Virus record (IMG/VR): IMGVR_UViG_3300025133_009608
Coordinates: 186,001-250,000 of that record
DNA: 64,000 bases
Direction: 5' to 3' (one strand)
Part shown: positions 24,377-57,009 of the stretch, one piece after another
Layout of the letters: each line of letters opens with the position of its first letter
Numbering within the stretch: position 1 is the stretch's first letter
The notes under the pieces: model-generated
Told to the model about the DNA's origin: nothing
Seen by the model: only the letters and a program-made list of their open reading frames with translations
Database searches by the model: none
Program-made: the position numbers and the translations under genes

Positions 24377-26623
24377 TCATTTTGAAGGCAGCGTCTTTAA
24401 TATGTTTTTGCACTTAGGATATCCACTACATGCAAAAAACTTTCCGTTAGATGATGTTCTTTCTACAACTTCATTCTTTTTACACTTTGGACAAGTAACT
24501 CCTGTTCCCTTCGCGACTGCTTTCTTTTTGCTTTTTTCTATAATATTCCCATCGGCATCTATATTGACAATGGTCTTGCACTTTGGATATTGATTGCAAG
24601 AATTAAATTTCCCATACCTGCCGGTCTTCTCTATCAAGTCTCCATTTTTGCACTTGGGACACTTCATTCCAATAGACTTGGGCGCTTCACGCAGAATCAT
24701 TTCGTCATTTTCGCCAACACTCGCCGTGAACTTGCATACTGGATAGCTCTTACAGCCGAAGAACGGCCCTCGCTTTGACTCTCTTTTTATAACTATATTG
24801 GAGCACTCGGGACACTTATGACCCGTCTCTACTGTCTCTGGTGCGTTTTCCTTCAACCCAAGCTTTGCTGTCCCATCGCATTCGGGCCACGCAGTACACG
24901 CCAAAAACGGTCCAAATTTAGATAACTTCTTCCTCATCTTCTCGGAGCATTTTGGACACTCAACGTCCGATACAAACGTGCTGGGAAGCTCTGCCTCCAT
25001 GGCGGAGTCGACCTGATCGCTTAGGCCGGAATTAAAAAACTCCAAAACGTCTGGCAGCCTTTTGCTTCCATCTGCAATTTTATCTAAATTAGATTCCATG
25101 TCTGATGTAAACTTAGCATCAACGATCGATGGAAAGCTGTCAGTCAAATAGTCAGAGACCATGATTCCGGTTTCTGTTGCTGCCAAAGACTTCTTTTTTC
25201 TTTCCACATACTTTCTATTAAGAAGAGTATCCAGAATAGAAGCATAGGTGCTCGGCCTTCCAACTCCCTCCTTTTCCAGGAGCTTAATCAATGATGCGTC
25301 AGAAAACCTAGACGGAGGTTTGGTAAAATGCTGGGAAGAAGTAAGTTTATTCCAAGATATCTTTTGGCCAACACTTACCTTTGGAAGGATGACATCATCT
25401 TTTATCTCTCCGTACTCCCTTAGGAAGCCATCGAACAGTAGCGTGCTTCCGTTTTTCTTAAAATTGAATATAGTTTTTCCATGCTCATATTCCAGCCTCA
25501 AAGAGACCTGTCCAAATTCGGCGTCTGCCATTTGGGAGGCGGAAAATCTACTCGCAATCAATCGTAATAGCTTCTTCTCGTCCGAGGTTACGGGAGATGA
25601 GGACGGATCATACGTGGGGATTACCGCCTCGTGCGCATCTTGGGAGCCAGATTTTGGGCCATAAGCGATCACGGTCTTCGAGAGATATTTTTTTCCGTGG
25701 CTTTTCTCGAGCCTTGCTCTTAGGTCTAAAATCTTTTGAGGATCCACCCGAATAGAGTCTGAGCGGTGATACGTGATATTACCCTGACTAAAAAGACTTT
25801 GAGCTACATTCATGGTTTTTTTTGCACTCCACCCAAATGCATTGCTTGCAGACTGCTGCATAGTTGAGGTTATAAATGGGGGTGCGGGCTTTCTCGCCCT
25901 CTTCTTCGTTGTAAAATCAGAAACAATCAAATCGTCTTTCTTCTTGTCCATAGCGGAAGTAATCTTATCTGCATCTGCTTGGCTCTTTAATTTCGTCGCT
26001 TTTCCGTTTATTCCATAAAAGTCAGCATCAAAACTTAACTTTGTGGAAACAGAGATCTCCCAATATTCATCTGGAACAAATGATTGAATAATCTTTTCTT
26101 TATCTGCTATAAACTTGAGAGCTACAGACTGAACTCTACCCGCACTGGTTCCACGCAAGCCCTTATTCCACATCACAGGGCTCACACGGAATCCCACCAG
26201 TCTATCCGTCATTCGACGAGCCTGCTGGGCATCATAAAGATCCTCATTAAAAGGAATTGGATTCTTAATCCCGCCCAGCACATCTTTTTTCGTTATTGTT
26301 TTAAAAATTGAACGATAAATCTTCTTTCCGCGCTTCGGCAGGTGGCCCTTGATGTGAAAGGCTATTCCGCTACCTTCCCTGTCTGCATCAGTCGCGATAT
26401 AAATTTCATCGTGCTGCTTCGCCTGCAGCTTGATGTTTTTTACAACATCCTTTTTGTCCTGACTGACAAGATAGTTCGCGGTCCAAGTATCAGTATCAAT
26501 GCCCATATTCTTTTTGGACAAGTCCATAATATGACCAACAGATGCTATGACCGTGTAGCCGGGCCCCAGAATCTTTTTTATTTTTGCGCACTTATTCGGT
26601 GATTCGACAATTACTAACGGCAT
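24377..26623 (-). CDS. topA: DNA topoisomerase I (type IA) with C-terminal zinc ribbons
   Basis: IVESPNK, ATDADREG, SAGRVQS, ITYHRSDS, QDAHEA, GRPSTYA; four C4 ribbons. Confidence 0.95.
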   Translation of the reverse strand: MPLVIVESPNKCAKIKKILGPGYTVIASVGHIMDLSKKNMGIDTDTWTANYLVSQDKKDVVKNIKLQAKQHDEIYIATDADREGSGIAFHIKGHLPKRGKKIYRSIFKTITKKDVLGGIKNPIPFNEDLYDAQQARRMTDRLVGFRVSPVMWNKGLRGTSAGRVQSVALKFIADKEKIIQSFVPDEYWEISVSTKLSFDADFYGINGKATKLKSQADADKITSAMDKKKDDLIVSDFTTKKRARKPAPPFITSTMQQSASNAFGWSAKKTMNVAQSLFSQGNITYHRSDSIRVDPQKILDLRARLEKSHGKKYLSKTVIAYGPKSGSQDAHEAVIPTYDPSSSPVTSDEKKLLRLIASRFSASQMADAEFGQVSLRLEYEHGKTIFNFKKNGSTLLFDGFLREYGEIKDDVILPKVSVGQKISWNKLTSSQHFTKPPSRFSDASLIKLLEKEGVGRPSTYASILDTLLNRKYVERKKKSLAATETGIMVSDYLTDSFPSIVDAKFTSDMESNLDKIADGSKRLPDVLEFFNSGLSDQVDSAMEAELPSTFVSDVECPKCSEKMRKKLSKFGPFLACTAWPECDGTAKLGLKENAPETVETGHKCPECSNIVIKRESKRGPFFGCKSYPVCKFTASVGENDEMILREAPKSIGMKCPKCKNGDLIEKTGRYGKFNSCNQYPKCKTIVNIDADGNIIEKSKKKAVAKGTGVTCPKCKKNEVVERTSSNGKFFACSGYPKCKNILKTLPSK

Positions 26624-32378: not shown

Positions 32379-33002
32379 TTAGCTCGGGAGGCACGAATCC
32401 CACGGCCTTCCCCCTTTTCCAAATACGTGCCCAGAATCCCTGCCGAGCTCTACCCAGCAATTATTTTCTTGCCGAGCCCAGTAGGGCGGAGAAGAAAGCC
32501 TTATACTGTAATAATAAGATGCATTTCCAATTTCGCCACCACTTTTTTCTCCGGAGCTTACAATCTGCCTTGCGGCCGCCCATTTCTCAGTATTTTTGTA
32601 TCTCATGATAAATTCAGAATACGTTGATGCAGAATAGCTATTAAGACATGAAAACTCATACGGAGAAGTAACTACTTCGTACATTGACTTCCCTGAATAT
32701 TCAGACCTGTTTTTTATAACTGTAAATACATTCTTCATAGCAACCACTCCTTGTGCTTGCGCCTCCGCCATTACTACTGATATAATTAAATCAATTGAAT
32801 TAGATGGCTCCGGGACGACAATAAGCTGCCCAGCCCATATCCTGCCCGGGGTTACCCCCGGGTTGGCAAGGCGCAGCTCTTCTTGTGACACTCCCATTCT
32901 TTCTGCTATCTGCCCAAATGTATCACCAGGTACAACAACATATGTTGACTCAGAGGCCATAATTATCTTTATGTAACTCTCTATTTTGTTTTTTCTTTTC
33001 AC
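32379..33002 (-). CDS. LysM plus SleB-like (Hydrolase_2) cell-wall hydrolase
   Basis: YVVVPGDTFGQIA LysM; MAEA...VIKNR...YEFSC...A.YYY...PYW...GHVF. Confidence 0.85.
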   Translation of the reverse strand: MKRKNKIESYIKIIMASESTYVVVPGDTFGQIAERMGVSQEELRLANPGVTPGRIWAGQLIVVPEPSNSIDLIISVVMAEAQAQGVVAMKNVFTVIKNRSEYSGKSMYEVVTSPYEFSCLNSYSASTYSEFIMRYKNTEKWAAARQIVSSGEKSGGEIGNASYYYSIRLSSPPYWARQENNCWVELGRDSGHVFGKGGRPWDSCLPS

Positions 33003-34297
33003 AGAATTTCCGCCGCATGCGTTGCTAGTGGGCTGCGAACTCCCTTTAGGAGAGTTATGTGTCCGGCGAGCTCAAAGTCTTTAAACTTCTCTACAATAGC
33101 TCCGAGGCCGCAGGTGCTTGAGTCAAGGTGCGGCGCATCGATCTGCTCCAAGTCACCAAGCATAATTAGCTTCGAGCCCTCACCCATCCTAGTAATAACG
33201 GCTTTTGCTTCATGCAGCGTGATGTTCTGTGACTCATCTAGAATAAATAAAGTTCTTGGCAGGCTTCGTCCCCGAATGTGTGACAGTGCTTGAATTTCAA
33301 TAATTCCCTTATCAATCATTAAGTCCAAATAATCTCTTCCGTTTTTGAATATTATTTCAAGATTATCAAATATCGGCTGTAGCCATGGGGCCATCTTCTC
33401 TTCTAGCAGTCCGGGAAGGAATCCTATATCGGCGCTCATGCTTTCAGTTGGCCGAGAGATGATGATCTTGTCGTACGTCCCTATGTTTAGTTGGTGAATT
33501 GCCGCCACGGCAGCAAGCAAAGTCTTTCCACAACCGCTTTTTCCTGTTATAGTTGCGAGATGAACGTTGCTATCAAGAAGCATGTCCATCGCGAATGCTT
33601 GCTCTTTGTTTCTTGGAGATATTCCCTCTATGCCAAACCCCTTTGCGGAGGCAAATATTAGGGGCTTTATCTCTCCTCCTCGAAACGATGCGAGCGCACT
33701 CTGCTGCCCACCCTTTACTACTACAAATTCATTTGGCTCCAAAGAGAGATCATCAGCCTCAACGTAGCCCTCGCTGTAAAACGAATTTATCTGCTCGGGA
33801 GTCATATTCAATACAGAGACTCCAGTAAAAGCGCCTCTTCGCTCTACTCTTGCCTTTTCTTTTATATAATTTTCAGCTTTTAACCCAAGGCTATCACACT
33901 TTACTCTTACATTTATATCTCTAGAGACTAGGAAAACATTATCATTATTTTTCGAAAGCTTTACTGCGACAGATATAATTTTATTATCATTAGAGTCGGA
34001 CATTCCGGATGGAAGAATCGAGGTATCAGAGTCGGTTGATACAATGATCGTCTGGCCGTTATCAAGTGAGATTCCGTCTTGCAATGATCCTTTTTCTCGC
34101 AATTTGTCCAAAAAACGATTGATATACCGAGCAGAGTTTCCGGCCGAATCATTTCTAGTTTTTATATTATCTATTTCTTCTAACACTACCATTGGCAAAA
34201 CCACATCGGTATCTGGGAATCCGTGTATCGAGTCTTCATGATAAATTAAAACTGAAGTATCTAATACAAATGTTTTTCTTTTACTCTTCTCTGTCAT
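32999..34297 (-). CDS. phoH: PhoH-family ATPase with N-terminal PIN domain
   Basis: VLDTSVL PIN; GKSGCGKT; IGFLPG; RGRS; DESQN; GDLEQID. Confidence 0.9.
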   Translation of the reverse strand: MTEKSKRKTFVLDTSVLIYHEDSIHGFPDTDVVLPMVVLEEIDNIKTRNDSAGNSARYINRFLDKLREKGSLQDGISLDNGQTIIVSTDSDTSILPSGMSDSNDNKIISVAVKLSKNNDNVFLVSRDINVRVKCDSLGLKAENYIKEKARVERRGAFTGVSVLNMTPEQINSFYSEGYVEADDLSLEPNEFVVVKGGQQSALASFRGGEIKPLIFASAKGFGIEGISPRNKEQAFAMDMLLDSNVHLATITGKSGCGKTLLAAVAAIHQLNIGTYDKIIISRPTESMSADIGFLPGLLEEKMAPWLQPIFDNLEIIFKNGRDYLDLMIDKGIIEIQALSHIRGRSLPRTLFILDESQNITLHEAKAVITRMGEGSKLIMLGDLEQIDAPHLDSSTCGLGAIVEKFKDFELAGHITLLKGVRSPLATHAAEIL

Positions 34298-34643: not shown

Positions 34644-37169
34644 CTATCCACAGCGACTAGCCCCACAGCCAAGGCAGGTTGCACAGCCCTCCTGATAGAT
34701 AAGAGACCCTTCAGAGCCGCAACTCTGACAGGCCCGCTCAGATACCGCTGTTCCATCGCTTATATATTTCTTCAATACTCTGGCAACAACTTTGGAAAAC
34801 GATGAAAAATCTGCATCTTTATCCTTCTGAAGCTGCTCTACCATGTAATTAACTGGCGCTCCATGCCTGAGCCCGAGAGATATGGTTCTTGTGAATGCTG
34901 AATAATTTGGATTATCAAATATTTCAACTATATTTTTAACAACAAACTCATCGTCCTTCTCTCCGAATGATAAATCATATATTGAATTCATCGTCTTTCT
35001 GGACCTTTTCGTTATGGTCCCTTTCGCAAATGATCTCGGAATCTCCACATACCGGCTGAGCCCTCCGAATACCTCGTAGGGTCGCCCGCTCATTATGCCC
35101 ACCAGAATCGTCCACGCCTCGCCCTTGATGGATGCCCGATGGATTTCGCAAGAAAGGCTATCGGGGCGCCTGGGGGCCGAGTGCTGGTCAAAGATGCTAT
35201 CGCTATCATCGCTCGCATCACTCTTTGATATTAGAACCCCGTCTCTGCTTCCTTCGACATATACTGTCATGCCCTTTAGTCCCATTTCCCATCCTTTTCG
35301 GTAGATATTATCGACATCTTTTGCAGTGGCACTGCTCGGTAAGTTTGTGGTTCTGCTTATTGCATGGCAAATCCATTTTTGAGCCGCAGCCTGAAGCCTA
35401 ACTCCAGACTCCCAATCTATTTCTGCCGATGTCGCCCCGTGATAGGGGGACTCTGCCGGATCCGACTTCCCGGATATCTCCATCCATTTTTTAAAATTAT
35501 GATGATAAACAGAAAAGTGCTGCCACTTATCTCCCATCTCATCTATAAAGTCAATCGCAGAATCATCATAAGATGATATATTCATAGGGATCTTCTTTCT
35601 CCTAATATATTCAAGCCTAAAGGAGGGCTCGATTCCCGAAGTGGTTTGAGTAAGGCAGGATACGCTCCCGCAAGGCGCGATTGTTGAAATAGATATATTT
35701 CTCCGTCCATGCTTAAGATGCAGTTCCCTGAGCATATCGCTCTCAGCGAATAGGCGCTCTATAAATGGATGGCCTTCTTCTTTTTCAAAAGAGTAAATCT
35801 CAAAAGCCCCCCGCTCCGATGCCAGCATACATGACTCTGTATACGATGATATTGCAAGTTCTTTTGTTATCTTTTCAATCATCGCGATAGATTCGTCCGA
35901 TCCATACCTGAGTCCGAGCATCGCAACGGTATCTCCAAGGCCGGTCATTCCAAGGCCCGTTCTTCTCCCTGCCTCTGCAGACTTCCTGATTTTCAGCCAC
36001 AGACTCAATTCTACTGCCTTCGTGTCCTCCGGTTCTGGATCGGATTTTATTTTTCTTATAATATTATCGATATGGTCGATTTCTATATCTACCATATCAT
36101 CCATCAGTCTCTGGGCCTTTCTGGTTAGTTTTGAAAATAGTTTAAAATCAAATTTTGAATTATTTTTAAATGGGTTTTCCACGAAAGAGGTGGTATTTAA
36201 TAGCAATAGTCTACAGCTGTCGTTTGGAGATAAGACCAACTCTGAGCATGGATTGGTGCTTGTTATCCCAAATCCCTCCGACTCATAAGCATTGGCAGGA
36301 GTATTGTTTAGTATGTTATCCCAGAATAATATGCCAGGCTCGGCAGAAACATGTGCTGCCGAAACAATTTCTCCCCAGAGAGCTTTCGCTGATACCATTT
36401 TTGATATCTTAATCTCTGAGTCCTTTGCGTCTACCGGCCACCGAAGCTGAGCATCAGAATCAGACTCTACCGCACTCATAAATTCGTCGGAAAGCCTTAT
36501 AGATATATTTGCTCCAGTAACCTTTGTCTTGTCTTTCTTTATTTCTATAAATGTTTTTATATCAGGATGATGGACAGATATCGTGATCATCAGCGCCCCT
36601 CTTCGATTGCCTTGTGCTACCTCTCTGCACGAATTAGAGAACCTCTCCATGAAGATCCCGATTCCATCTGTGGTCTTCGCCGCATTGGACGTTGGCATGC
36701 CCTGCGGCCTTATATTTGAAATATCAAACCCAACGCCGCCTCGGCGCTTCATGATCTGCACCTGTTCCTGGTCTGTTTTTAGGATTCCTCCATAGGAATC
36801 TATAGGAGAGTCGATCACGAAGCAGTTCGATACAGATTGGATTTGAAACTTATTCCCTATGGCCGACATCGGAGATCCCTGCGGGACAATATACTTAAAT
36901 CCATCGAGTAGACCGAAGATCTCTTTTTCGCTCATTGGGTTATCGTATCTTTTTTCAATTCTGGAGAACTCTCTCGCTAATCGCTGGTGCATTTGTCTCG
37001 GCGATGTCTCAAGAAAGTCTCCATCTAAATTTTGCAGCGCATACTTCGAAGTCCAGACTCCCGCAGCAAGCTCGTCTCCGTCAAAGTACTCTAGGGCGCC
37101 GCTATATGCGTCATTGTATGTGCTCATCTTGTCATCTCTGAGCTTGATTTTTTCTAATTCATTTTCCAT
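34644..37169 (-). CDS. nrdJ: Class II (B12-dependent) ribonucleotide reductase
   Basis: SNCFV, RRGGVG, TNPCSE, IAPCGS, TTSGIEP; C-terminal Cys motifs; no beta subunit nearby. Confidence 0.9.
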   Translation of the reverse strand: MENELEKIKLRDDKMSTYNDAYSGALEYFDGDELAAGVWTSKYALQNLDGDFLETSPRQMHQRLAREFSRIEKRYDNPMSEKEIFGLLDGFKYIVPQGSPMSAIGNKFQIQSVSNCFVIDSPIDSYGGILKTDQEQVQIMKRRGGVGFDISNIRPQGMPTSNAAKTTDGIGIFMERFSNSCREVAQGNRRGALMITISVHHPDIKTFIEIKKDKTKVTGANISIRLSDEFMSAVESDSDAQLRWPVDAKDSEIKISKMVSAKALWGEIVSAAHVSAEPGILFWDNILNNTPANAYESEGFGITSTNPCSELVLSPNDSCRLLLLNTTSFVENPFKNNSKFDFKLFSKLTRKAQRLMDDMVDIEIDHIDNIIRKIKSDPEPEDTKAVELSLWLKIRKSAEAGRRTGLGMTGLGDTVAMLGLRYGSDESIAMIEKITKELAISSYTESCMLASERGAFEIYSFEKEEGHPFIERLFAESDMLRELHLKHGRRNISISTIAPCGSVSCLTQTTSGIEPSFRLEYIRRKKIPMNISSYDDSAIDFIDEMGDKWQHFSVYHHNFKKWMEISGKSDPAESPYHGATSAEIDWESGVRLQAAAQKWICHAISRTTNLPSSATAKDVDNIYRKGWEMGLKGMTVYVEGSRDGVLISKSDASDDSDSIFDQHSAPRRPDSLSCEIHRASIKGEAWTILVGIMSGRPYEVFGGLSRYVEIPRSFAKGTITKRSRKTMNSIYDLSFGEKDDEFVVKNIVEIFDNPNYSAFTRTISLGLRHGAPVNYMVEQLQKDKDADFSSFSKVVARVLKKYISDGTAVSERACQSCGSEGSLIYQEGCATCLGCGASRCG

Positions 37170-37170
37170 A

Positions 37171-37710
37171 TTATCGGCTCTCTACTTTTAGGTTTTTGAT
37201 CGCTTCATTTTTTATCTGACGAACCCTTTCTGGGGAAACTCCGATATCTTTTCCGATTTCGGCCAAAGTATGTCCGAATAGAATATTTTTAATTAATACG
37301 CCACTCGCCCTTCTATCCGAGTAGTTTTTTACATCAATAATAGTGGTGGCCCCATCTTCGTAACAACTACAGGTGCTTGCAAGCATATCTCTGCATATCT
37401 TTTTCGCAGCGCTATTTTTTTGATTTTTTGAAAACGAGTCCCTTAAGCCGTTTGCCACATTCCAATGCATCCATCTAAAGAAATCAAATTCCTTTTTATA
37501 ATCATAAGAAGAGATGGCGCGCCACATACCCAGCTTTATAATTTGGAGAACATCATCCTTTTCCGAAAAGAATCTAGACTTATTGAACTTACTCTCGGCC
37601 AGATGCTGAACTTTTCCGAATAATTCGTGCCTCCATTTCAATGAATCATTATTTTCATTAATTATATAAAGTATTTTTATATCCAAATTGGTTATGCTAT
37701 AAAACGTCAC
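37171..37710 (-). CDS. Phage sigma-70-family factor (regions 2 and 4)
   Basis: DDVLQ...GMWRAISSYD...F..W; TLAEIGKDIGVSPERVRQIKNEAIKNL. Confidence 0.85.
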   Translation of the reverse strand: MTFYSITNLDIKILYIINENNDSLKWRHELFGKVQHLAESKFNKSRFFSEKDDVLQIIKLGMWRAISSYDYKKEFDFFRWMHWNVANGLRDSFSKNQKNSAAKKICRDMLASTCSCYEDGATTIIDVKNYSDRRASGVLIKNILFGHTLAEIGKDIGVSPERVRQIKNEAIKNLKVESR

Positions 37711-38288
37711 TTACCATCCTCTTCATCGTCATCTCTTGGGTGATATTGGTCAACAAAAACTCCTTCTTTCCAGGTTCTAACAACGGATGTTTCCTCAGAC
37801 AAGGTAAACACGGCCATAACGTCTTCTCTTGTAGAAAATGATGCCGCACTAATATGCCTAGTCCCGCATCCCTCTGGAACTTCAAGAGCCGGATTTTCTA
37901 CAATTAGATAAATTCTATTTCCAATTATTTGTCCATTTCTATTTACAATAACGGCGCCATCATGGCCTTCTTCTAGCAAGAGCTTTATATCATCTTTAAA
38001 AGAAAGAGAGGAAACGTCCATATATTTTTGGATTGGATTTACTCCAATCTGTCTCATTCCGCCTATTATGTGCCCCTTCGCAGTGTCAAATACCCCAAGC
38101 ACAACCAGGATCCCTATGGTCTTCTTCTTTTCGAGAAAGTCTTTTGAGATTTCACATAAAAAGCTAAAAATTCTCTTTTCTACTTTCTGGTGCTCTCTTG
38201 CTGCGCTAAATTGAAACGAAAAATCTGCCGATGCAGATTTGTTATGGGCCACAGGCCCCAGCTGTTCGGTTGGTTGATCGTCGTTCAT
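37707..38288 (-). CDS. Standalone diadenylate cyclase (DAC/DisA_N) domain protein
   Basis: HDGAVIV, GTRHISAA, LSEET. Confidence 0.8.
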   Translation of the reverse strand: MNDDQPTEQLGPVAHNKSASADFSFQFSAAREHQKVEKRIFSFLCEISKDFLEKKKTIGILVVLGVFDTAKGHIIGGMRQIGVNPIQKYMDVSSLSFKDDIKLLLEEGHDGAVIVNRNGQIIGNRIYLIVENPALEVPEGCGTRHISAASFSTREDVMAVFTLSEETSVVRTWKEGVFVDQYHPRDDDEEDGK

Positions 38289-38365
38289 TCTAAACCTCGG
38301 ATTGTTTTGTGTGGCTAGATTATACTAATCCGAAGGCAAGGTTTTTCGATAAAAACTTATTTTAT

Positions 38366-39757
38366 TTATCCACTAAACCCAAGCTCGTCACGAGTATAGT
38401 GCAGCTCCTCTCCGTCGTCGTCTATTGTCTGAACATTTACTGGGGCTCCCCATACTTCAAACAAGTATCCCATTACCTTTTCTAGGTGCTTGGGATCGAG
38501 AGTCCCAATGTCTCCACTTGTATGTTCGAGCTCCAAGCCCTCATGACTTGCCTTTACAATGCACAGCTCCGGGGCGCGATACCCATAGCAATCAGAAATC
38601 AAATTCTCAACCACATCGTCTAAATCTGTTGATATAATCTTAATAATTTTTCCGGCCTTTTGGTCTTTTATATACTTATAGCAAAACAGCTTGAGGCCCT
38701 CCGCGATCTCCTTGGTCAAATAGGTTCGCACGAAAGATACGTCATCTTCATTTGCAACAACTTCATAAATTTTTTCTAGGCCATTTATTTCAGACTCTCC
38801 GTCTTCAAACTTTTTGTCCCAACGCTTCTTAATGTCGTTTAAAAGAGTGAAGCCCAAAAAGTATGGATTAATTTTTAACTTATTTCCGCCAGGCTGAACA
38901 ACTCTTTCGTGAATCTTTACGAACTCTAGGTATTCGGCCTCTGTGATAGACTTCATTCTGTACATTATCTCCGCGTGAATCCAAGATGCAATCCCTTCGT
39001 TTAGTCGCTGAGTAACGTACTGTGGATAAAAATAATATGACTCCTCTCTGATGATCTCAAAAATATCTCGCTCCCAATCTTCCAAGTTTGCGTGCTGAAT
39101 TAAAAACCACAAAAGATCATATTCAGGATGCGGAGGAAACGTGGGGGGCTTTCTCTCTTTTTTCTTTTTCGGGGTACCAAGAATGTCTACGAACTCATCT
39201 TTGTGCCCTGCTCGCGCTTTATAGGACTTCTTAGGGAGCCCTTTACCATAGGGCTTTCTCAAAACGCCCCTGTGCCAGTCTATATTTTTATCCATAGAAA
39301 AGGCTACATCCATAATATGCTCAACGGCCTTTAGTCCGTGTTTCTCAATGTAGTCATCTATCCTTCTTGCCCTCTCTGCTGCGTGATAAACCATTTTGTT
39401 ATCTGTCTGTTTGAATAAATAATTATGCTTAAAACAGGCAGAGTGACCGAGCACATGTGCCATTACCATTATGTTTGCAATATCTGAATTTGTATCCAAT
39501 AAAAAAGCGTATGACGGATCATTATTTAGCACAAGCTCATAAACCTTTGAGTGTCCCATCTCTCCTTGCATCTTCTGATACTCATAAGACTGCCCATACG
39601 ACCAGTGCCTTGATCTTGACGGAAGACCATAAGACATAACCTCCAAAAGAACCTCCTGTCCAACAACTTCCCATTGGACTGGATAATAATCGAGATTCAA
39701 CTCTTCTTTTGCAATCTTTTCAATTTCTTTAAGTTTTTCTTTTAAATTTTTATTCAT
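38366..39757 (-). CDS. spoVR: SpoVR/YcgB family protein
   Basis: GLPSR..HWSYG, YELVLN.DP, AHVLGH..FKHN, NEGIASW, NPYFLG. Confidence 0.9.
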   Translation of the reverse strand: MNKNLKEKLKEIEKIAKEELNLDYYPVQWEVVGQEVLLEVMSYGLPSRSRHWSYGQSYEYQKMQGEMGHSKVYELVLNNDPSYAFLLDTNSDIANIMVMAHVLGHSACFKHNYLFKQTDNKMVYHAAERARRIDDYIEKHGLKAVEHIMDVAFSMDKNIDWHRGVLRKPYGKGLPKKSYKARAGHKDEFVDILGTPKKKKERKPPTFPPHPEYDLLWFLIQHANLEDWERDIFEIIREESYYFYPQYVTQRLNEGIASWIHAEIMYRMKSITEAEYLEFVKIHERVVQPGGNKLKINPYFLGFTLLNDIKKRWDKKFEDGESEINGLEKIYEVVANEDDVSFVRTYLTKEIAEGLKLFCYKYIKDQKAGKIIKIISTDLDDVVENLISDCYGYRAPELCIVKASHEGLELEHTSGDIGTLDPKHLEKVMGYLFEVWGAPVNVQTIDDDGEELHYTRDELGFSG

Positions 39758-39787
39758 GATATAAGCTGCTCCATGGCACCGGATAGA

Positions 39788-40981
39788 TTATTGACCCTTC
39801 TTTTTCTTCTTGGAAATATTATCTATGTTAAAGAACACTTTTAATGCGTCGAACACCTGGCTTCTCTCCGTTACTCTCATGGATACAAATCTAGTTCTAT
39901 TGATCTCTCGGGCAAGCAGGCTTGATAGCAGATCTCCCTCTCGAATCCACGCCCTATGCTCTGTGCTTGGAATAATCTCCCCGTATCCAATGGCCGTAGT
40001 CAGCGGAAGCAGTTTTTTTATATAGTCAACGCACAGAAGGTTATCTTCGCCCCAGTTGTCTCCATCAGACCACTCCATTATATAATTGTTGTATTCCTCG
40101 GGCGGGTGGTTTGACATAATGTGTTCATATGCCATCTTAAATGCAGAACTACACTTTGTTCCTCCGCCGCTATTTACGCTGAAAAATTGCTCTTCATCGA
40201 CTATGAAGGCTTCGGTGTCATGGGCAATAAATACTAGCTTTATATTATCGTACCTTCTCTTTAAAAACTGCACCATCCAGAAATAAAAGCTCTTCGCTAT
40301 ATATCTCTTCTCCTCAGTCATCGAACCGCTGCGGTCCATCATTGCATATATAACAGCGTTTGAATGATACTCTCTTACCGTATCCCAGGACCGATAGCGA
40401 AAATCTGACTCATTTATGCCATCAATTTTCGCCTCACCCTTAGCTGCATTTCTTTTTATGTTTTGAAGAATTGTTTTCTTCAAATCTAAATCTGGATTTA
40501 TTCCCTTCTTCTCAATTGAATCTACCTCTTCGTACTCTACGGCGATTGAGCTTCCAAGGTTTGGTTCCATCCACGGCAAATCCAGCTCCTTAAGAAGCAC
40601 ATCTACTAACTCGTCTATGGATACTTCCGCATCAAAGGTTCGGGGACCCGTTTCATCTCCAGGCTTTCCATCTCCGGGCTTACCCCTTTGGGGTTTTCCG
40701 TTCCCGATTCTAAATTTATCGCCCGGCTTCGTGCTAACCCCCTGGCCGACACCGCCGTTCTTATTTAGTTTCCCATATTTAAATTTGTACTGATCCAAGA
40801 ACTTTATCGGAACTTTTATCTTCTTATTGCCGTCGGTTGTTATAACATTGTATTCTGTAATAAGATCTTTTCCGTGTTTTCTTATGGCGTCTTTTACCAA
40901 CTCCTTATGCCTGTCAGAATCTCTCTTTCCACGGCGTTTAAGATTCCAAATGTCAGAGAGGCTTTTGCCATTTTTCGACAT
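39788..40981 (-). CDS. yhbH: YhbH/YeaH (DUF444) vWA-like protein
   Basis: D..RH, SNAVIYAMMDRSGSM, FIAHDTEA, SGGGTKCSSA, SDGDNW. Confidence 0.9.
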   Translation of the reverse strand: MSKNGKSLSDIWNLKRRGKRDSDRHKELVKDAIRKHGKDLITEYNVITTDGNKKIKVPIKFLDQYKFKYGKLNKNGGVGQGVSTKPGDKFRIGNGKPQRGKPGDGKPGDETGPRTFDAEVSIDELVDVLLKELDLPWMEPNLGSSIAVEYEEVDSIEKKGINPDLDLKKTILQNIKRNAAKGEAKIDGINESDFRYRSWDTVREYHSNAVIYAMMDRSGSMTEEKRYIAKSFYFWMVQFLKRRYDNIKLVFIAHDTEAFIVDEEQFFSVNSGGGTKCSSAFKMAYEHIMSNHPPEEYNNYIMEWSDGDNWGEDNLLCVDYIKKLLPLTTAIGYGEIIPSTEHRAWIREGDLLSSLLAREINRTRFVSMRVTERSQVFDALKVFFNIDNISKKKKKGQ

Positions 40982-40989
40982 TGCTTATC

Positions 40990-42915
40990 CTAGTTTCTGG
41001 CCATCAGTGAGCTGACGTACTTGAGCAGGTTGTTTGCGCTTTCCGGAGTATACCCATGATGATCACAAAGCGCCTCGATTACTACATTTAACTTTTTAAG
41101 TGCATTTTCATCTGGATTTCTTGTACTGACCGTCAACCTGATGACGTCCTGCCGCTCATCAAATAGCTGCTTCTCGAGACCCTCTCTTAGTCTGGGGTGC
41201 TCTTTGTAATTATAGGTTCCATTATCATTTGCAGAGCGGAGCATCTTTCTAAAGATTTCTTGTCTGAATGATTTCTTTCCGGACTCTGTAATTTTCACCT
41301 TCTCTTCTATTGAGCGCATAAGTCTTTCGTCTGGCTCTCGAAGATTCCCCCACTCATCCTCTATTTTTGAGCCATCCAAAAATGCCTCTACTTGATCCAT
41401 ATAGTTTTGAAGTAAGTTTGAAACCTCTTCTTCGAAGTTTAGGAAGAAAGCTTTTTGAACCTCGTTCTTAGCCAACTTGCTATACTCCTCTATCACAAAG
41501 GTTAAGATATTCTCTAGTCGCTCAATTTCCTTTTCGTCAAGTTTCGGATTGGAGATGAACCCTGATCTAATAGATCGAATTATATCGACTGGAGAAATAC
41601 TAGAAACGCCATCTTCGGCAAGGGTTGCTGAAATTCTATTTATAATATATCGAGGAGACACCCCGTCCATGCCTTCTGATGAAAACTCTTTTCTAAGAGC
41701 CTGAACTTCCATCTTTGTAAAGCCCTCAACGTCATCTCCATTATATAGGCGCATTTTATTCATTATGGATAAGCCCTCATTTTTAGAAGTCTTAAGCCTT
41801 GAGAGCACTGCAAACATAGCGGCACAATGAAGCGTATACGGGGCTATATGAACGCCATCGAATCTAGACTGAGAGATCAGCTTTTCGTATATCTTCATCT
41901 CTTCGCTGACCCGAGTATTGTAAGGAACTTTTACCACAATTATGCGGTCGTGCAGAGCCTCCATCTCATCTTTCGCCAAAAAACGATCGTATTCTGTCTG
42001 GTTTGTGTGGGCTAATAAAAATTCATCTGCATAAATTAATGGAAATCTTCCAGTTTTAATATTCTTTTCTTGTGCCAATGTTAGCAGAACATAGAGGAAT
42101 TTCTGATCGACCTTGAGCATTTCGACGAACTCCATCATCCCGCGATTTGCTATATTTAACTCCCCATCAAATCTGTACGCTCTAGGATCAGATTCTGCTC
42201 CATATTCCCCAATCTTGCTAAGATCCATGGAGCCAACTAATTCTGAAATATCTTGGCTCTTTTTATCTGACGGCACGAAGGTTCCAATTCCAGTTCTAGA
42301 CTGCTCTGATAGTATCACTCTCTTTACTGGGAGGTCTAGAAAGTTCCCATCGTATTTATCTCGAAGGATAAGACCCATAAGAGGGCTTAGCTGCCCACGG
42401 ATTAGGATGCCGTGCTCCTCCTTGAACTGGCCCCTTAGGCTTTCGGGAATTGCGCATAACGGGTCCTCCTGCATTGGGGAGTCTGAGAGTCCGTATAGGG
42501 CGCCCTCGTCTATTCTGGAAAATGCCTCCATTCCTCTTTTTAGCGAAATGGCCAACTGAGACTTACCACTAGAAGTTGGTCCAAACATTAAAAGTATTCT
42601 TCGAGAAACTTCACTGCCAGTAGCTGCGGCCCGAAGGTAGGACATGATTTCTTCTATTGATTCGTCAATACCAAATAAATCATTTTCAAAGAATTTATAA
42701 TTTGTTATATTGCCATCCTCGTCTCTGTCAATTCCGGCGTGTTCGATCATCTTTAGGGCCCGCTCGTGAGCACCCATATGAATCGAGGGATTCGTGATTA
42801 CCATCTCGATATAATCTTTGAGAGTGCCCTTCCACAAGGACTCTTCGCCGGCCTCAATGTGCTCGCCTAGCGCGTCTAAAATTGAAAGATTTTTCTTTGA
42901 AGTCTTTTTTGGCAT
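40990..42915 (-). CDS. prkA: PrkA/YeaG AAA+ serine kinase family protein
   Basis: GPTSSGKS, QDISELVGS, ESDPRAY.FDGELN.ANRG..EFVEMLK, EGMDGVSPR. Confidence 0.92.
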   Translation of the reverse strand: MPKKTSKKNLSILDALGEHIEAGEESLWKGTLKDYIEMVITNPSIHMGAHERALKMIEHAGIDRDEDGNITNYKFFENDLFGIDESIEEIMSYLRAAATGSEVSRRILLMFGPTSSGKSQLAISLKRGMEAFSRIDEGALYGLSDSPMQEDPLCAIPESLRGQFKEEHGILIRGQLSPLMGLILRDKYDGNFLDLPVKRVILSEQSRTGIGTFVPSDKKSQDISELVGSMDLSKIGEYGAESDPRAYRFDGELNIANRGMMEFVEMLKVDQKFLYVLLTLAQEKNIKTGRFPLIYADEFLLAHTNQTEYDRFLAKDEMEALHDRIIVVKVPYNTRVSEEMKIYEKLISQSRFDGVHIAPYTLHCAAMFAVLSRLKTSKNEGLSIMNKMRLYNGDDVEGFTKMEVQALRKEFSSEGMDGVSPRYIINRISATLAEDGVSSISPVDIIRSIRSGFISNPKLDEKEIERLENILTFVIEEYSKLAKNEVQKAFFLNFEEEVSNLLQNYMDQVEAFLDGSKIEDEWGNLREPDERLMRSIEEKVKITESGKKSFRQEIFRKMLRSANDNGTYNYKEHPRLREGLEKQLFDERQDVIRLTVSTRNPDENALKKLNVVIEALCDHHGYTPESANNLLKYVSSLMARN

Positions 42916-42931: not shown

Positions 42932-43219
42932 TTATTTTTCTTCACCAAAGATGTCACGAATAGCTCTCTGGTCACCTTCTCTTATTTTATTAGTAATAAC
43001 CCTGGCCTCTTCTTTTGCTTTTTCAACTATTTCTTCTTTTCTTCTTTCTATCTTACCGAAGGGGGCCGAGACTTTTCTGATCAAAGTTTTATTTTGACAT
43101 TCATCGCATAAAAGATCTTCAAAATGATTATTACAAATTAGTTGTTTATATTTTAAAATTCCATAATTAAAATTATGCTGAGTCAAGCATTTGGTACATT
43201 CAAATGTATATTTTGGCAT
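42932..43219 (-). CDS. FmdB-like zinc-ribbon protein
   Basis: MPKYTFECTKC...CDEC. Confidence 0.7.
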   Translation of the reverse strand: MPKYTFECTKCLTQHNFNYGILKYKQLICNNHFEDLLCDECQNKTLIRKVSAPFGKIERRKEEIVEKAKEEARVITNKIREGDQRAIRDIFGEEK

Positions 43220-43404
43220 TATGCCTCCGAGGTTTCTTTATAAAAGAGCAAATCATTTTTAAATTCTATATTTCCAGATAGAGACAGATCTCTTAGTAAT
43301 TTTTTTTTGAACTTTTCATCAGTTATTACTACGCTTATTTCCAAATCATTAGTTTTTGTGTCATATTTAATATTTTTAATCTTTCCAACCTTTTTTTCTT
43401 TCAT
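43219..43404 (-). CDS. Small hypothetical protein
   Basis: Coupled ORF. Confidence 0.5.
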   Translation of the reverse strand: MKEKKVGKIKNIKYDTKTNDLEISVVITDEKFKKKLLRDLSLSGNIEFKNDLLFYKETSEA

Positions 43405-43712
43405 TCCATCCCCAGTGCGGCGAGCGCCTCTAGTATATGTGGATTAGACTGATTCGCCATAAACAGCAATAGGCTCTTATCTAATTTTTCATATTCACAA
43501 ATCATATATGACGGTATGTCAATTGCCGGAATCGCCTCGGGCCGGTCCGGACTGCCCATATATTTGTCAAGAGGAATGGCTCTAATATACTTATCGCTTC
43601 GGCCAACTTTTACGATCAAATATGTTCGATCTTTTTCGAAGATAGTGCTGATCTTGACTATATCTTTTGAGCGGAGATTATTTATATCTGATGGCTTAAA
43701 TTGCATTTTCAT
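43401..43712 (-). CDS. Hypothetical protein
   Basis: Coupled ORF downstream of dnaB. Confidence 0.5.
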   Translation of the reverse strand: MKMQFKPSDINNLRSKDIVKISTIFEKDRTYLIVKVGRSDKYIRAIPLDKYMGSPDRPEAIPAIDIPSYMICEYEKLDKSLLLFMANQSNPHILEALAALGME

Positions 43713-45063
43713 CTCCCGGATCCTCAACCCAGTCATCCGGGAAATCTTCAATTCTAGACTTTGCGAAAACTTTTCTTAGCGAGACGGTCCCCTTTGGGCC
43801 GTCTCTATTTTTTACAATATGTATTTGCATATCTTCTCGTAACTGCTCGTCTTCTCTGTTCCCAATTATGAACGCAATGGCTGCATTATCTCCAATCATT
43901 TTGCTTCGGCCAAAATCCTCAAGGCTAACATTGTCTTCTTGTTTTCCGTTCTTTTTTCTTCCCGCGGCCTTTCTTTGCGCTGCGGTTATAACCGGAATGT
44001 CTTTTTTTCTGCAAAACTCATGCATCTCTTCGGACACCTTTCCGACGTCGAGCCAGTCGGATCCAGCGGTTCCAAGGACTGGCTTCATTAGTTGCAGGTA
44101 ATCGATAAAGATTGCATCCGGCCTAAATATTCCCATAATACTTTCAAACTTTGCTTCGATCTCTCCCATGGTAGAGCCGCGTGGCAAATCGAGTATATAA
44201 AATATTTTATCATAGTTTTTTTGAAACTTAAGACCCTTTTTCCATCGTTTCTTTTCGCCATCTTTTAGCCGCCCGCGCATAACTCCGCGGTGGGATACTT
44301 GCGCTATATTCGCATCAAGCCTCTGCTCTAGCTGCTTTTTGCTCATCTCGAGTGATACATATAAAATATTTTTTCCATCATTAGATGTAATATCGCCAGT
44401 TTCCGGAGAATTTGTTCCCCTCCATGCATTTATGGCCATATTCATCATCAATAATGACTTGCCCGATGAGCTTGCTCCGCCGATCACCAACATCTCTGAG
44501 TTCTTAATCCCCCAGGTATATTCATCTAGCGCAGGATATCCTGATAAAAAGCCGCGTATTTCTTCTGGGTTTTCCGCCGTATATTCATAATCTCTAATTC
44601 GGTCCTCAACCGACATTGAAACCATTCCCTCTGAAAATACATCGTTTTTGTACAGCTTCTCAGTCTGCGAAAGTACTTTTTTCAAGCCCTCATTGAAATC
44701 CTCAACCGACTCCTCCCCCCTCTCTACATCCTCTGCGACCCCTCCTACTTTGCTAATTAGAAATTTATTATAGCGCTCTTTTATTTTATCTAAAAAATAT
44801 CCGACTTCATTTGCGGCACATGACTCTTCTTCTATAAATCTTGCGATCTCTGAGTCCTCTCCCTCTTCCTCGAGCAAGGAATATAGGACATCAAAAGATG
44901 GCGGAATCTTGTGCCGAGAATAATATTTATACATTGCAGCCTCTGCCGGCTTCATGGTCGGAAGAACAACTTTGTTTAAAAGATCATGCTCTATCTCTCT
45001 ATAGATCCCATTTAGCTCGATTGAGCCTTTTAGCATCCAGTTTATAATCTTAGCATCTATCAT
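43696..45063 (-). CDS. dnaB: DnaB-like replicative helicase
   Basis: GASSSGKS, VSLEM, FIDYLQLM, AAQ, KNRDG. Confidence 0.9.
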   Translation of the reverse strand: MIDAKIINWMLKGSIELNGIYREIEHDLLNKVVLPTMKPAEAAMYKYYSRHKIPPSFDVLYSLLEEEGEDSEIARFIEEESCAANEVGYFLDKIKERYNKFLISKVGGVAEDVERGEESVEDFNEGLKKVLSQTEKLYKNDVFSEGMVSMSVEDRIRDYEYTAENPEEIRGFLSGYPALDEYTWGIKNSEMLVIGGASSSGKSLLMMNMAINAWRGTNSPETGDITSNDGKNILYVSLEMSKKQLEQRLDANIAQVSHRGVMRGRLKDGEKKRWKKGLKFQKNYDKIFYILDLPRGSTMGEIEAKFESIMGIFRPDAIFIDYLQLMKPVLGTAGSDWLDVGKVSEEMHEFCRKKDIPVITAAQRKAAGRKKNGKQEDNVSLEDFGRSKMIGDNAAIAFIIGNREDEQLREDMQIHIVKNRDGPKGTVSLRKVFAKSRIEDFPDDWVEDPGDENAI

Positions 45064-50211: not shown

Positions 50212-52635
50212 TTACCGTCTGCGTCTCTTGTCTATGATAGAGCCGCGCTGAAGCTTGTTAAAGCCCGACTTCTTCTTCTTGATTTTTCTGTGAACCTGGT
50301 CGGCAACGGTGTTAACGTTATCCTCTTCAAGATCGAGGGTCATTGCTGCCACTCTTCCTTTTTCTTTTTGGCCGGCGACCTCTGCCTGCATTCTGCTCTC
50401 TTGTTTGAGGCTTTCAATTCGGTCCCTGGGAAGCCCGAGTCCGGCGAACCAAGAGTAAATCTTTATGGAATCGGAGTCACTCTCTATGTCGTATACTCCC
50501 TGGAATACGGAGGCTCCGTTTGTTTGCTCTGAAATCATATGAAAACAATAATTTATATTTATTGCCGGAAGCTTGTTAAGAACGCCCTCTGGGGCTGAAA
50601 TTATAACTCCACCGACCCTAGTCTGAGAGATGTCAAAGCCAGATGCCAACATATTCCCACTAAGACTCTCTATTACCGCCTCTGCTAGCGCCGTCTCCTC
50701 CATATAATCTTCAACTTCAATCATCCCATAAACAGAGCAGTCTCCGCATGAGATTATCTTTCCAAAGTCACTTGGATCCATTGAAGTATATCGAGACGGA
50801 CGAGACGTAAGTGTATTAAATACATGAAGCGGTTCAACAATTGCATTGTTAGATACGCTCCAAAAGTTATTCTGACTGAGGTTAGAATAAATTTGCTCGA
50901 TTCTCGCATTATCAGCCACAATAAGACTCGAAACCATATTGTCAGAAGTCATTCTTGCAAGTCTAGAAAGGGTTTCTATCGAGTTTCGCTTAGACCGGGC
51001 GTCCTCGGTTGCCTTCGGAAGAATGTAAATCACCCCCACTGGCATGCCGGTCTCAAATAACATCCCCACCATAGTGTCAACGCTTGAAGAGCCCGTTCCG
51101 CCGCCGCCCGATATTGCCAAATAAACCATGTGGTTTCCCGCAGCAACGTCTCCTACGAACTTATGTATATCGGACTCGTTTTCTTCAAAAATCTCTCGAC
51201 CAAGATCCAGATCCTTTCCCGTCCCACCAAGACTGCCCTCAAGAAGCAGCTTCTGAGTGGGAAGAACATCTATAAACTCCAGGTCTTGCGCGGAAGTATT
51301 AATTACTCCAACGTCATATCCTTTTTTATGCATTGTTTCTGCAATTCTCGACCCGGCCTGACCGACACCTATTACTGCTATCTCAATGCTGACAGACTGC
51401 TGAGTTATTATGCTTGGCACATCGTCCTCCATAGTTTTGCTTACCTTGGCCCTTAGAGCCTCAAGGACGTTTTCATCCAAAGAGCTTCCAGAATCTTCGG
51501 GCTGCTCTGTCGAATCATCAAAGGCGTCCATGAGTGCCTCATTTTCAGCCTCAATTTGCTTTGTTTTTTTCGTCTTCTTCTTTATCTTTACATCTTTGAC
51601 GCTAGTTTTCTTCGCTGTCATAAAATCCTCATAATAGCTCTTGAGCTGTGTTAAAATTTGATATTCGCTGGTTATCGCAAATTTTACCGGAGTTTCGTTT
51701 GCATTATACGAAATAACATCACAAAGATACTTGGAATGTTTATTCATAGGATCGGCATTCGTAGTTATTATATCACACCCCATCGCAGAGGCCTCATAGA
51801 GACTCATGCCCAGACCCTCTCGGGTTGACGGCATTAGCACACAATGAGAATTGTCATAAATACTAACCAGGTCTTTCGACACTAATATAGAATTTATTAG
51901 TATGATATTCTTACATTTTTCAGCCAGGGCCCGATCCCTATCAGAAAGAAGCCCGCTTATTGTCAGGGTTGTGCTCGCTCCAGAGTTAGTTGAGAATTTC
52001 GTATATGCCTTAATTACTTCTGTTGTATTTTTCTGACTAAACGATGGGTTTGTAGACCCGGGATGAAAAAATCTTATGCCAGAAAGGTCTTTTTTGTCTA
52101 CCTTTCGAGAAAAGGTGTCTTGATTTACGTAATTCCAGGACATTTTTTTTGCGTTTTCATATTTCCCAAAGATCTCTTTTGATGTATCTGTCAGGCACCA
52201 TATTTCATCAAACGTTCTGTATGAATTGTTATCTATATACCTCTTTATCGACCACTCCGGCATTGGTATGTCTATAATTTTCAAATTTGGGTTGCCCGTC
52301 CTGGCCCTTGTTGTCCATTGAGCCTTCGGCATGAAGGTTTCGAATGATATTATAAGATCTATATTATTTTTGGCAACAATATGTTCGATCCGAGTAGTTT
52401 GCGCGACAATTGTCAACCCGGCATGCAGATTGGCGTCGTTTGGCCGGGGGTACACCGGAGAGAATCCCGCCCGGCCATGAAGTCTTTTGAACTTTGGCTT
52501 TGCAGTATAAATAACTTTATTGTTTTTCGACAGCATGTCTCCAAGAGATTTCGCCAAATAATAAAGACCCGACTCGAATAGATACGTCTTTATTAGAATG
52601 CTCTTGTTTTTAATGTTATCTACTTCGCTATCCAT
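50212..52635 (-). CDS. In-frame fusion of a GT-B (GT4-like) glycosyltransferase and a tubulin/FtsZ-family GTPase (PhuZ/TubZ/CetZ-like), with internal RBS+ATG at 51621
   Basis: GT: PSTREGLGMSLYEA. Tubulin: GVGQAG, INTSAQDL, GGGGTGS, DPSD. Confidence 0.85.
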   Translation of the reverse strand: MDSEVDNIKNKSILIKTYLFESGLYYLAKSLGDMLSKNNKVIYTAKPKFKRLHGRAGFSPVYPRPNDANLHAGLTIVAQTTRIEHIVAKNNIDLIISFETFMPKAQWTTRARTGNPNLKIIDIPMPEWSIKRYIDNNSYRTFDEIWCLTDTSKEIFGKYENAKKMSWNYVNQDTFSRKVDKKDLSGIRFFHPGSTNPSFSQKNTTEVIKAYTKFSTNSGASTTLTISGLLSDRDRALAEKCKNIILINSILVSKDLVSIYDNSHCVLMPSTREGLGMSLYEASAMGCDIITTNADPMNKHSKYLCDVISYNANETPVKFAITSEYQILTQLKSYYEDFMTAKKTSVKDVKIKKKTKKTKQIEAENEALMDAFDDSTEQPEDSGSSLDENVLEALRAKVSKTMEDDVPSIITQQSVSIEIAVIGVGQAGSRIAETMHKKGYDVGVINTSAQDLEFIDVLPTQKLLLEGSLGGTGKDLDLGREIFEENESDIHKFVGDVAAGNHMVYLAISGGGGTGSSSVDTMVGMLFETGMPVGVIYILPKATEDARSKRNSIETLSRLARMTSDNMVSSLIVADNARIEQIYSNLSQNNFWSVSNNAIVEPLHVFNTLTSRPSRYTSMDPSDFGKIISCGDCSVYGMIEVEDYMEETALAEAVIESLSGNMLASGFDISQTRVGGVIISAPEGVLNKLPAININYCFHMISEQTNGASVFQGVYDIESDSDSIKIYSWFAGLGLPRDRIESLKQESRMQAEVAGQKEKGRVAAMTLDLEEDNVNTVADQVHRKIKKKKSGFNKLQRGSIIDKRRRR

Positions 52636-56969: not shown

Positions 56970-57009
56970 AGTAATAGGTCTCAAATTATTAGTAAGGATT
57001 TAGAATTCA

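Follow-up and report, generated by a model that had tools for sequence, protein, structure and literature searches.

The window analyzed in this study, a 64,000-nucleotide stretch of DNA, comprises bases 186001–250000 of the IMG/VR phage record IMGVR_UViG_3300025133_009608 (316,664 bp, estimated completeness 94%). Five genes of its minus strand, located between positions 37171 and 42915, are the subject of this report: prkA, yhbH (yeaH) and spoVR (ycgB), referred to below as the triad, a gene for a stand-alone protein with the diadenylate cyclase (DAC) fold, and a gene for a sigma-70-family factor, with the ribonucleotide reductase (RNR) gene nrdJ lying downstream. An earlier reading of the sequence (the original prediction) had already named these genes, and Pfam and NCBIfam matches placed all of them where it had located them. 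Together, PrkA/YeaG, YhbH/YeaH and SpoVR/YcgB form one of the most widespread bacterial modules still awaiting a mechanism, and their occurrence in phages is already known at the level of annotation. The new elements are (i) a DAC family that is restricted almost entirely to phage-like contigs and carries RHI in place of the RHR motif, (ii) the fixed place of this DAC after the triad throughout a large clade of marine jumbo phages, (iii) the intein-marked conservation of the triad, which exceeds that of DnaB, and (iv) the co-occurrence of a DHH-DHHA1 protein.

The prkA gene (40990–42915, minus strand) encodes a PrkA-family AAA+ ATPase of 641 amino acids (aa), counted from an ATG. Matches to PF08298 (1.4e-113, 380 bits) and PF06798 (1.6e-69, 234.9 bits), which together span residues 51–653, establish its family membership. 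The longest open reading frame (ORF) begins at a GTG at position 42975, and the ATG at 42915 lies 20 codons inside it; since the relatives align only from approximately residue 28 of the long ORF, the ATG is the likely start. The Walker A motif (GPTSSGKS, residue 132 of the long ORF) is kept; in PrkA of B. subtilis, Lys108 is needed for ATPase activity (PMC9512850). In full-length tblastn alignments the phage protein was approximately 50% identical to PrkA of Thermomicrobium roseum and Bacillus licheniformis and approximately 30% identical to proteobacterial YeaG, and it scored 301 bits against NF011999, the YeaG-type equivalog with a cut-off of 576. By these comparisons, it is a protein of the PrkA type and not of the YeaG type.

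The second gene of the triad, yhbH/yeaH (39788–40981, minus strand), encodes a DUF444 protein of 397 aa with a vWA-like domain (PF04285, 1.5e-82, 278 bits). Its score against TIGR02877 (2.6e-104, 349 bits) lies under the equivalog cut-off of 468, and it shares 36% identity over the full length with YhbH of Thermomicrobium. The MIDAS-like DxSxS motif is kept, with MMDRSGSM aligning with MMDVSGSM of the Thermomicrobium protein. The product of spoVR/ycgB (38366–39757, minus strand; 463 aa; PF04293, 1.5e-104, 350 bits) is 34% identical to Thermomicrobium SpoVR over 464 columns, i.e. the full length. All three proteins score under the NCBIfam equivalog cut-offs. The genes are adjacent, lie on one strand and follow the order found in the T. 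roseum operon and in 14 phage lineages, in agreement with the earlier description of a complete triad in canonical order.

The gene following spoVR (37707–38288, minus strand) encodes the stand-alone DAC-fold protein of 193 aa (PF02457, 4.2e-12, 46.1 bits against a cut-off of 27). Its best NCBIfam match was DacZ (1.3e-13); only the C-terminal part of the DacZ equivalog NF041371 (106–267 of 270) was matched, with 50.9 bits against a cut-off of 430. In a Foldseek search with an AlphaFold2 model of the protein (pLDDT 78), the top 50 matches were all CdaA, CdaM, DacA or DisA (best E 3e-7, TM score of approximately 0.65 by target). The motifs DGA (residues 110–112), GTRH (142–145) and SEE (164–166) are kept. 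Within the first of these (D110-G111-A112), D and G are invariant among 25 aligned sequences, and the segment containing the last, TLSEETS, aligns with VVSEETG of CdaA, SEE being invariant in the phage family. In place of RHR the protein has R144-H145-I146, and RHI was found in all of the 120 homologues listed (54–100% identity to the query).

The consequences of this substitution for activity may be judged from related proteins. The profile search yielded DacZ-like neighbours in which a hydrophobic residue commonly occupies the last position of the RHx motif (RHI, RHL, RHA, RHM or RHV), and only 6 of 149 have RHR. Minimal DACs with the deviant motifs DGF and GGR are active and make 3′3′-cUA or cyclic di-AMP (c-di-AMP) (bioRxiv 10.64898/2026.08.10.743927), the DacZ of Haloferax is an active cyclase (PMC6741144), and it was an RHR-to-AAA triple mutant of M. 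tuberculosis DacA that lost both activity and ATP binding (PMC3328451). Since DGA, GTRH and SEE do not vary, DacZ-like proteins differ among themselves at the third RHx residue, deviant DACs are active and only the triple RHR mutant has been shown to be dead, the phage DAC is likely to be catalytically active. Its product was thought to be c-di-AMP; because RHR is invariantly RHI in the phage family, this is weaker than had been claimed, and c-di-AMP is treated here as an assumed product.

The distribution of the DAC family is unusual. It comprises at least 186 clusters at 90% identity (E up to 1e-3), many of them on marine contigs of 200–330 kb. An exhaustive profile search of 1.84 billion representatives returned 19 DAC proteins to 1e-30 and 55 to 1e-10, beyond which the matches were DacZ-like cellular proteins. 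Patterns of the family, when applied to 185,579 species genomes, recovered a single locus (L040; NZCX01000035.1, 8231 bp). This contig, binned as ‘Candidatus Pacearchaeota’, carries dnaB, small ORFs, prkA, yhbH, spoVR and the start of the DAC gene. We rejected it as a cellular home of the family, since it is a mis-binned fragment of the phage clade. In IMG/VR, a pattern scan with the single DAC protein gave no match, and an alignment-based scan found 16 loci. As judged by its sequences, the family is therefore nearly confined to phage-like contigs. The literature searched contained no account of a diadenylate cyclase encoded by a phage, and on that basis this would be the first DAC family seen almost only in contigs of this kind.

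PrkA, YhbH, SpoVR and DACs are typical cellular families, and IMG/VR labels one relative (G002) a provirus, both of which could point to an assembly chimera or to contamination with host DNA. Such an origin is extremely improbable, and we regard it as ruled out. Of the words sampled from the block, at least 91% are present in three marine metagenome runs, the runs listed including none of RNA sequencing, and Logan contigs from two of these independent runs span the gene junctions (37100–41290) with zero differences from the window. The same arrangement recurs in synteny in 14 lineages that come from many samples, and among these is a complete genome of 335,169 bp with direct terminal repeats (G023); the only DAC locus among the species genomes was the phage-like fragment described above. 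The view that the block belongs to a phage and not to a host chimera thus held. A DNA-level search with the 5.8-kb block against 50,697 phage records gave no match.

In order to examine the linkage of these genes, DAC-bearing loci were gathered from IMG/VR and public assemblies and duplicates were collapsed, which gave 14 distinct lineages of the phage clade. In every one of them prkA, yhbH and spoVR lie upstream of the DAC gene (in G023 with mobile genes interposed). This synteny survey upheld the proposed association of the DAC with the triad; that of the sigma factor was upheld in part, the sigma gene directly following the DAC in 8 of the 14 lineages. A protein search of the complete genome G003 found no sigma orthologue elsewhere in it. 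The order spoVR, two small ORFs, DAC, sigma, RNR, phoH occurs in a distant relative (L052).

The block is part of a replication and nucleotide-metabolism stretch (a dnaC-like gene, dnaB, three small ORFs, prkA, yhbH, spoVR, DAC, sigma, nrdJ and phoH). Because the relatives are collinear with the window all the way from dnaB to phoH, adjacency of the DAC and the triad would be expected even without any coupling between them. The block ranks among the best conserved of the clade, and its genes are real and linked by descent. The triad and the DAC are two modules that can occur apart, and no obligate circuit joins them; a working circuit among the genes is put forward as a hypothesis.

A maximum-likelihood tree of PrkA united the DAC-bearing phages in a single clade (100/100). 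This clade clusters with the Thermomicrobium/Bacillus/Paenibacillus type and also with the Thermus phages, which have long branches. The Ralstonia phage RsoM2USA and other IMG/VR phages fall within the proteobacterial YeaG type. By their placement in this tree, phages therefore acquired the triad at least three times. The comparison with cellular copies that had been proposed for the triad thus yielded an affiliation of the clade, and no donor can be named from it, since the cellular sampling consisted of only seven plasmid-borne copies. The record MN688132.1 (Enterobacter phage LAU1, 30.8 kb) also starts with a YeaG gene, of the enterobacterial type (bases 1–1908); this may be host sequence at one end of a record that derives from a prophage.

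Across the clade, identity to the proteins of the window was 69–75% for PrkA, 58–67% for YhbH and 51–61% for SpoVR, compared with 48–66% for DnaB, 46–69% for the DAC, 25–41% for sigma and 30–60% for the three small upstream ORFs. By this measure the phages hold the triad under stronger constraint than their own DnaB. The triad is also a target of mobile elements. In SpoVR of several relatives, LAGLIDADG inteins occupy two different sites, near residues 108 and 258; LAGLIDADG and intein-splicing domains were confirmed in L007 (11907–14480) and L073 (6315–8969), and in L066, L069 and L080 only split tblastn matches were seen. PrkA of L069 is split near residue 320, which is consistent with an intein and was likewise seen as a split match only. 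In G023, genes with DUF7487 and helix-turn-helix (HTH) domains (L073, 14–2188 and 4290–6313) have been inserted on both sides of yhbH, separating it from prkA and from spoVR; these are probably free-standing homing elements. Inteins and homing elements tend to be found in the best-conserved genes of phages, and the inteins in the triad families may mark functional cores. A gene set that is more conserved than the replicative helicase and is targeted by inteins implies a central role in infection, and this clade of abundant marine jumbo phages offers a compact natural system in which the triad can be studied.

The sigma gene (37171–37710, minus strand) encodes a two-domain factor of 179 aa of the sigma-70 family, with matches to Sigma70_r2 (PF04542, 2.5e-06, 27.6 bits), to region 4 (PF04545, 9.9e-08, 31.8 bits) and, above the cut-off of 42.9, to TIGR02937 (45.5 bits). 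As had been noted earlier, the DAC stop codon (TGA, 37709–37707) overlaps the GTG start of sigma (37710–37708) in the sequence GTGA; a GAGGA Shine-Dalgarno sequence lies upstream. The GTG start is supported by the orthologues, which begin with Met at the same alignment column. The orthologues are only 25–41% identical, and the factor has a conserved N-terminal extension. The genome contains three sigma-like genes in total, which suggests a multi-sigma transcription programme. The other two encode a protein of 306 aa with regions 2 and 4 (G000:C1, ~136067–138087; L041:1456–2376) and a protein of 144 aa with region 4 only (G000:C1, ~61948–62382; L043:1363–1797).

The 77-nucleotide spacer between spoVR and the DAC gene is the only enlarged spacer of the block. 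It contains a −10-like box, AGTATAAT (38319–38326, minus strand), which is conserved at this place in five divergent relatives (the window and L047–L050). In the whole genome only five intergenic GTATAAT boxes occur in gene orientation, one of them upstream of a tRNA. Because the box is conserved in an enlarged spacer and such boxes are rare in the genome, we infer that it may be an internal promoter, in which case the DAC and sigma genes (and possibly nrdJ) may form a separate transcription unit. A generic scan of the region for promoters and terminators gave results at chance level.

The nrdJ gene (34644–37169, minus strand), which encodes a class II RNR (TIGR02504, 1.8e-140), begins 1 nucleotide after the sigma stop codon. 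The position of an RNR gene after the DAC and sigma genes is conserved in the relatives, and its sequence is highly divergent or intein-bearing. In comparisons of the window gene with those of relatives (L005:13045–16242, L006:14133–17297, L054:1–2431), some of the RNRs are 26–28% identical, others exceed 1000 aa, and the one in L054 contains an intein. This variability suggests either replacement or the gain of inteins.

A further candidate component lies outside the window. The genome encodes a DHH-DHHA1 protein of 289 aa (G000:C1:106953–107822; L055:955–1824), which is conserved in the complete genomes of the DAC clade G002 (46% identity) and G003 (43%) and was not found in nine triad-bearing phage records without a DAC. 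In L054 a DHH gene lies 6 kb from the DAC gene. Stand-alone DHH-DHHA1 enzymes include phosphodiesterases for c-di-AMP and pApA, and the phage protein is a candidate for such an activity on either compound. In jumbo phages, DHH enzymes have been proposed to degrade cyclic nucleotides as a form of counter-signalling (PMC7824862).

The phage block may be compared with several known systems. The cellular prkA-yhbH-spoVR (yeaG-yeaH-ycgB) operons of the Bacillus/Thermomicrobium type contain the same three full-length families in the same order; in contrast, the phage triad resides in a lytic-looking jumbo phage, near dnaB and nrdJ. Among cellular loci, the gene downstream of spoVR was examined in the Thermomicrobium operon alone, and there it is not a DAC, whereas the phage clade always has one. 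Phage triads have been annotated before (PHROGs families 22605/19072/35217; “serine kinase” and “SpoVR” in phiYS40), and the paper on the Ralstonia phage RsoM2USA lists both of these proteins (PMC8504454); no discussion beyond annotation was found in the literature searched. The triads of the Thermus phages phiYS40, TMA and Lalka represent a separate capture, with a different gene order and a position beside terL, and those of RsoM2USA and most IMG/VR loci represent another, of the proteobacterial YeaG type. None of these phages has a DAC anywhere in its record.

As regards the DAC, the DacZ class provided its nearest family and neighbours in the profile and atlas searches. The two have the DAC fold, DGA and SEE in common; unlike DacZ, the phage protein lacks the N-terminal DacZ domains, is invariant for RHI and occurs almost only in phage-like contigs. 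PanS of the Panoptoo system is also a small stand-alone DAC domain with a non-canonical second motif (bioRxiv 10.64898/2026.08.10.743927). However, PanS is host-encoded, in a two-gene operon with an S2TM-beta effector, whereas the phage DAC is flanked by spoVR and sigma. The phage gene has no S2TM-beta neighbour and gave no PADLOC match, the latter being weak evidence since the 2023 version of PADLOC predates Panoptoo. The only similarity found in the PADLOC scan was that of sigma region 4 to MzaA. Group 2 jumbo-phage sigma factors, also members of the sigma-70 family, are presumed to bring the RNA polymerase of the host to phage promoters (PMC7824862); the factor described here differs in being short (regions 2 and 4), fast-evolving and absent from 6 of the 14 lineages.

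The best explanation of these observations, which we hold tentatively, is that the triad and the DAC form a host-physiology block acting on osmotic or starvation adaptation. The triad would work as it does in cells, as a remodelling module that is driven by ATP and serves the state of stress or starvation, and would keep a nutrient-limited or osmotically stressed host productive during the long infection by a jumbo phage. A DAC dimer would produce c-di-AMP or a related 3′3′ cyclic dinucleotide, this nucleotide would act on host receptors for potassium and osmolyte homeostasis, and the DHH-DHHA1 enzyme would turn the signal over. The sigma factor would steer the RNA polymerase of the host towards a class of phage promoters. 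It would be a neighbour of the sensory module, belonging to the phage transcription programme, and not a necessary part. Every step beyond domain identity, conservation and synteny is inferred. The sole mechanistic thread tying PrkA to the DAC is osmotic physiology. In B. anthracis, a mutant of prkA fares poorly under osmotic stress (PMC13001217). It is established that c-di-AMP is the main osmoregulatory nucleotide.

Several points weigh against a host-physiology block that is linked and works through c-di-AMP. The second Arg of RHR is lost throughout the phage DAC family, the sigma gene is missing from six lineages, approximately 25 records of other phages with a triad lack a DAC throughout, and the distant phage L054 has a DAC with neither the triad nor sigma beside it. 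The genome encodes no PstA/DarA or RCK_C receptor domain, and proteins of the DHH-DHHA1 type have other substrates as well. For PrkA, the published activities conflict, the protein being a protease according to one report (PMC9512850) and neither a protease nor a kinase according to another (PMC13001217). The labels of sporulation and dormancy, which the original prediction had attached to the module, found only partial support: they are taken over from Bacillus, non-sporulating bacteria widely carry the triad, and the samples are marine metagenomes.

It is possible, if somewhat unlikely, that the triad, the DAC and sigma are neighbours by descent only, i.e. independent cargo genes in a collinear early or middle region transcribed from a single strand. 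The genome as a whole is organized in this manner, with 288 of its 322 long ORFs on a single strand and tight or overlapping junctions throughout, so that the close spacing of the block follows the rule. The synteny from dnaB to phoH, the separability of the modules and the AGTATAAT box in front of the DAC fit the same reading, as do the mobile genes between the triad genes of G023, where the set is unbroken; much of this evidence also tells against the operon and control circuit originally proposed. Nevertheless, the DAC stands right after spoVR in 14 of 14 lineages despite insertions, inteins and RNR replacement elsewhere in the block, and the order spoVR, two small ORFs, DAC, sigma is kept even in the distant L052. 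We consider it unlikely that the DAC is instead a counter-defence enzyme unrelated to the triad, whose product (c-di-AMP, cUA or a similar nucleotide) holds decoy-guarded effectors of the Panoptoo/Panoptes kind off or jams cyclic-nucleotide immunity. Minimal DACs do occur in anti-phage defence, where a constitutive product holds the effector off (bioRxiv 10.64898/2026.08.10.743927), a TIR-SAVED effector can read host c-di-AMP (bioRxiv 10.1101/2025.06.19.660554), jumbo-phage DHH phosphodiesterases have been proposed as counter-signalling enzymes (PMC7824862), and the phage DAC family is both minimal in size and restricted to phage-like contigs. On the other hand, there was no PADLOC match, and the stable place of the DAC in a replication and nucleotide-metabolism block and its high conservation are unlike the fast turnover that is usual for anti-defence genes.

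Two further alternatives concern single components, and both appear quite improbable. The DAC-fold protein might be no cyclase but a nucleotide-binding regulator or sponge with a degenerate RHR motif. This would accord with RHI in all 120 homologues listed and with the loss of ATP binding after mutation of the whole RHR motif in DacA (PMC3328451); however, DGA, GTRH and SEE are invariant, DacZ-like relatives commonly have a residue other than Arg at the third position, and PanS is active with GGR. The triad, for its part, might be a chaperone of the MoxR/vWA type for virion or replisome assembly and have no role in host physiology. AAA+/vWA pairs have been proposed as assembly chaperones in jumbo phages (PMC7824862), the triad lies between portal/minor head genes and terL in the Thermus phage Lalka27b and adjoins terL in phiYS40, and in the window it adjoins dnaB. 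In the present clade, however, the neighbours are replication and nucleotide-metabolism genes and not structural ones, and cellular triads show stress and starvation phenotypes.

The host-physiology explanation can be carried one step further. The DAC product might be the direct input signal of the PrkA-YhbH-SpoVR machine, so that the cyclase and its AAA+/vWA effector would make up a remodelling system that is complete in itself, gated by a nucleotide and adjusted by the DHH-DHHA1 enzyme. This proposal is a long shot; if true, it would reveal the regulatory input that has long been missing for the PrkA/YeaG module. More generally, if a virus makes such a nucleotide itself and also encodes a DHH-DHHA1 protein, this would be a new form of viral control over host osmotic or immune signalling.

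The genome (G+C 43%, seven tRNAs) belongs to an uncultured clade of marine jumbo phages, the host of which is probably bacterial. Its TerL has at most approximately 25% identity to the TerL of any isolated phage. Host inference failed: psbA was not found, and the atlas taxa gave no pointer to a host. Shine-Dalgarno use is enriched (46% versus a background of 16%), which weakly disfavours hosts making little use of such sequences. An Rfam scan of the window detected no family, and hence no c-di-AMP riboswitch.

Between dnaB and prkA (42932–43751, minus strand) lie three conserved small ORFs of 95, 61 and 116 aa, whose order is kept in most relatives and which had no significant match in Pfam, PHROG or PADLOC. 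At the downstream end of the conserved block lies a PIN-PhoH gene (32999–34297, minus strand; PF02562, 9.9e-48; PF13638, 7.1e-29), which is syntenic in the relatives.

Elsewhere on the minus strand of the window, an ORF of 807 aa (50212–52635) joins a glycosyltransferase group 1 domain (residues 200–298) to a tubulin/FtsZ GTPase domain (418–583), a fusion that is unusual for a phage tubulin. A large transcription regulator of 710 aa (54852–56984) combines a Fis-type HTH_8 domain (1.8e-21) with another HTH close to residue 620. The window also encodes a poly(A) polymerase/CCA-adding-type nucleotidyltransferase (3968–5380) and a full bacterial-type topoisomerase I with four zinc ribbons (24377–26623).

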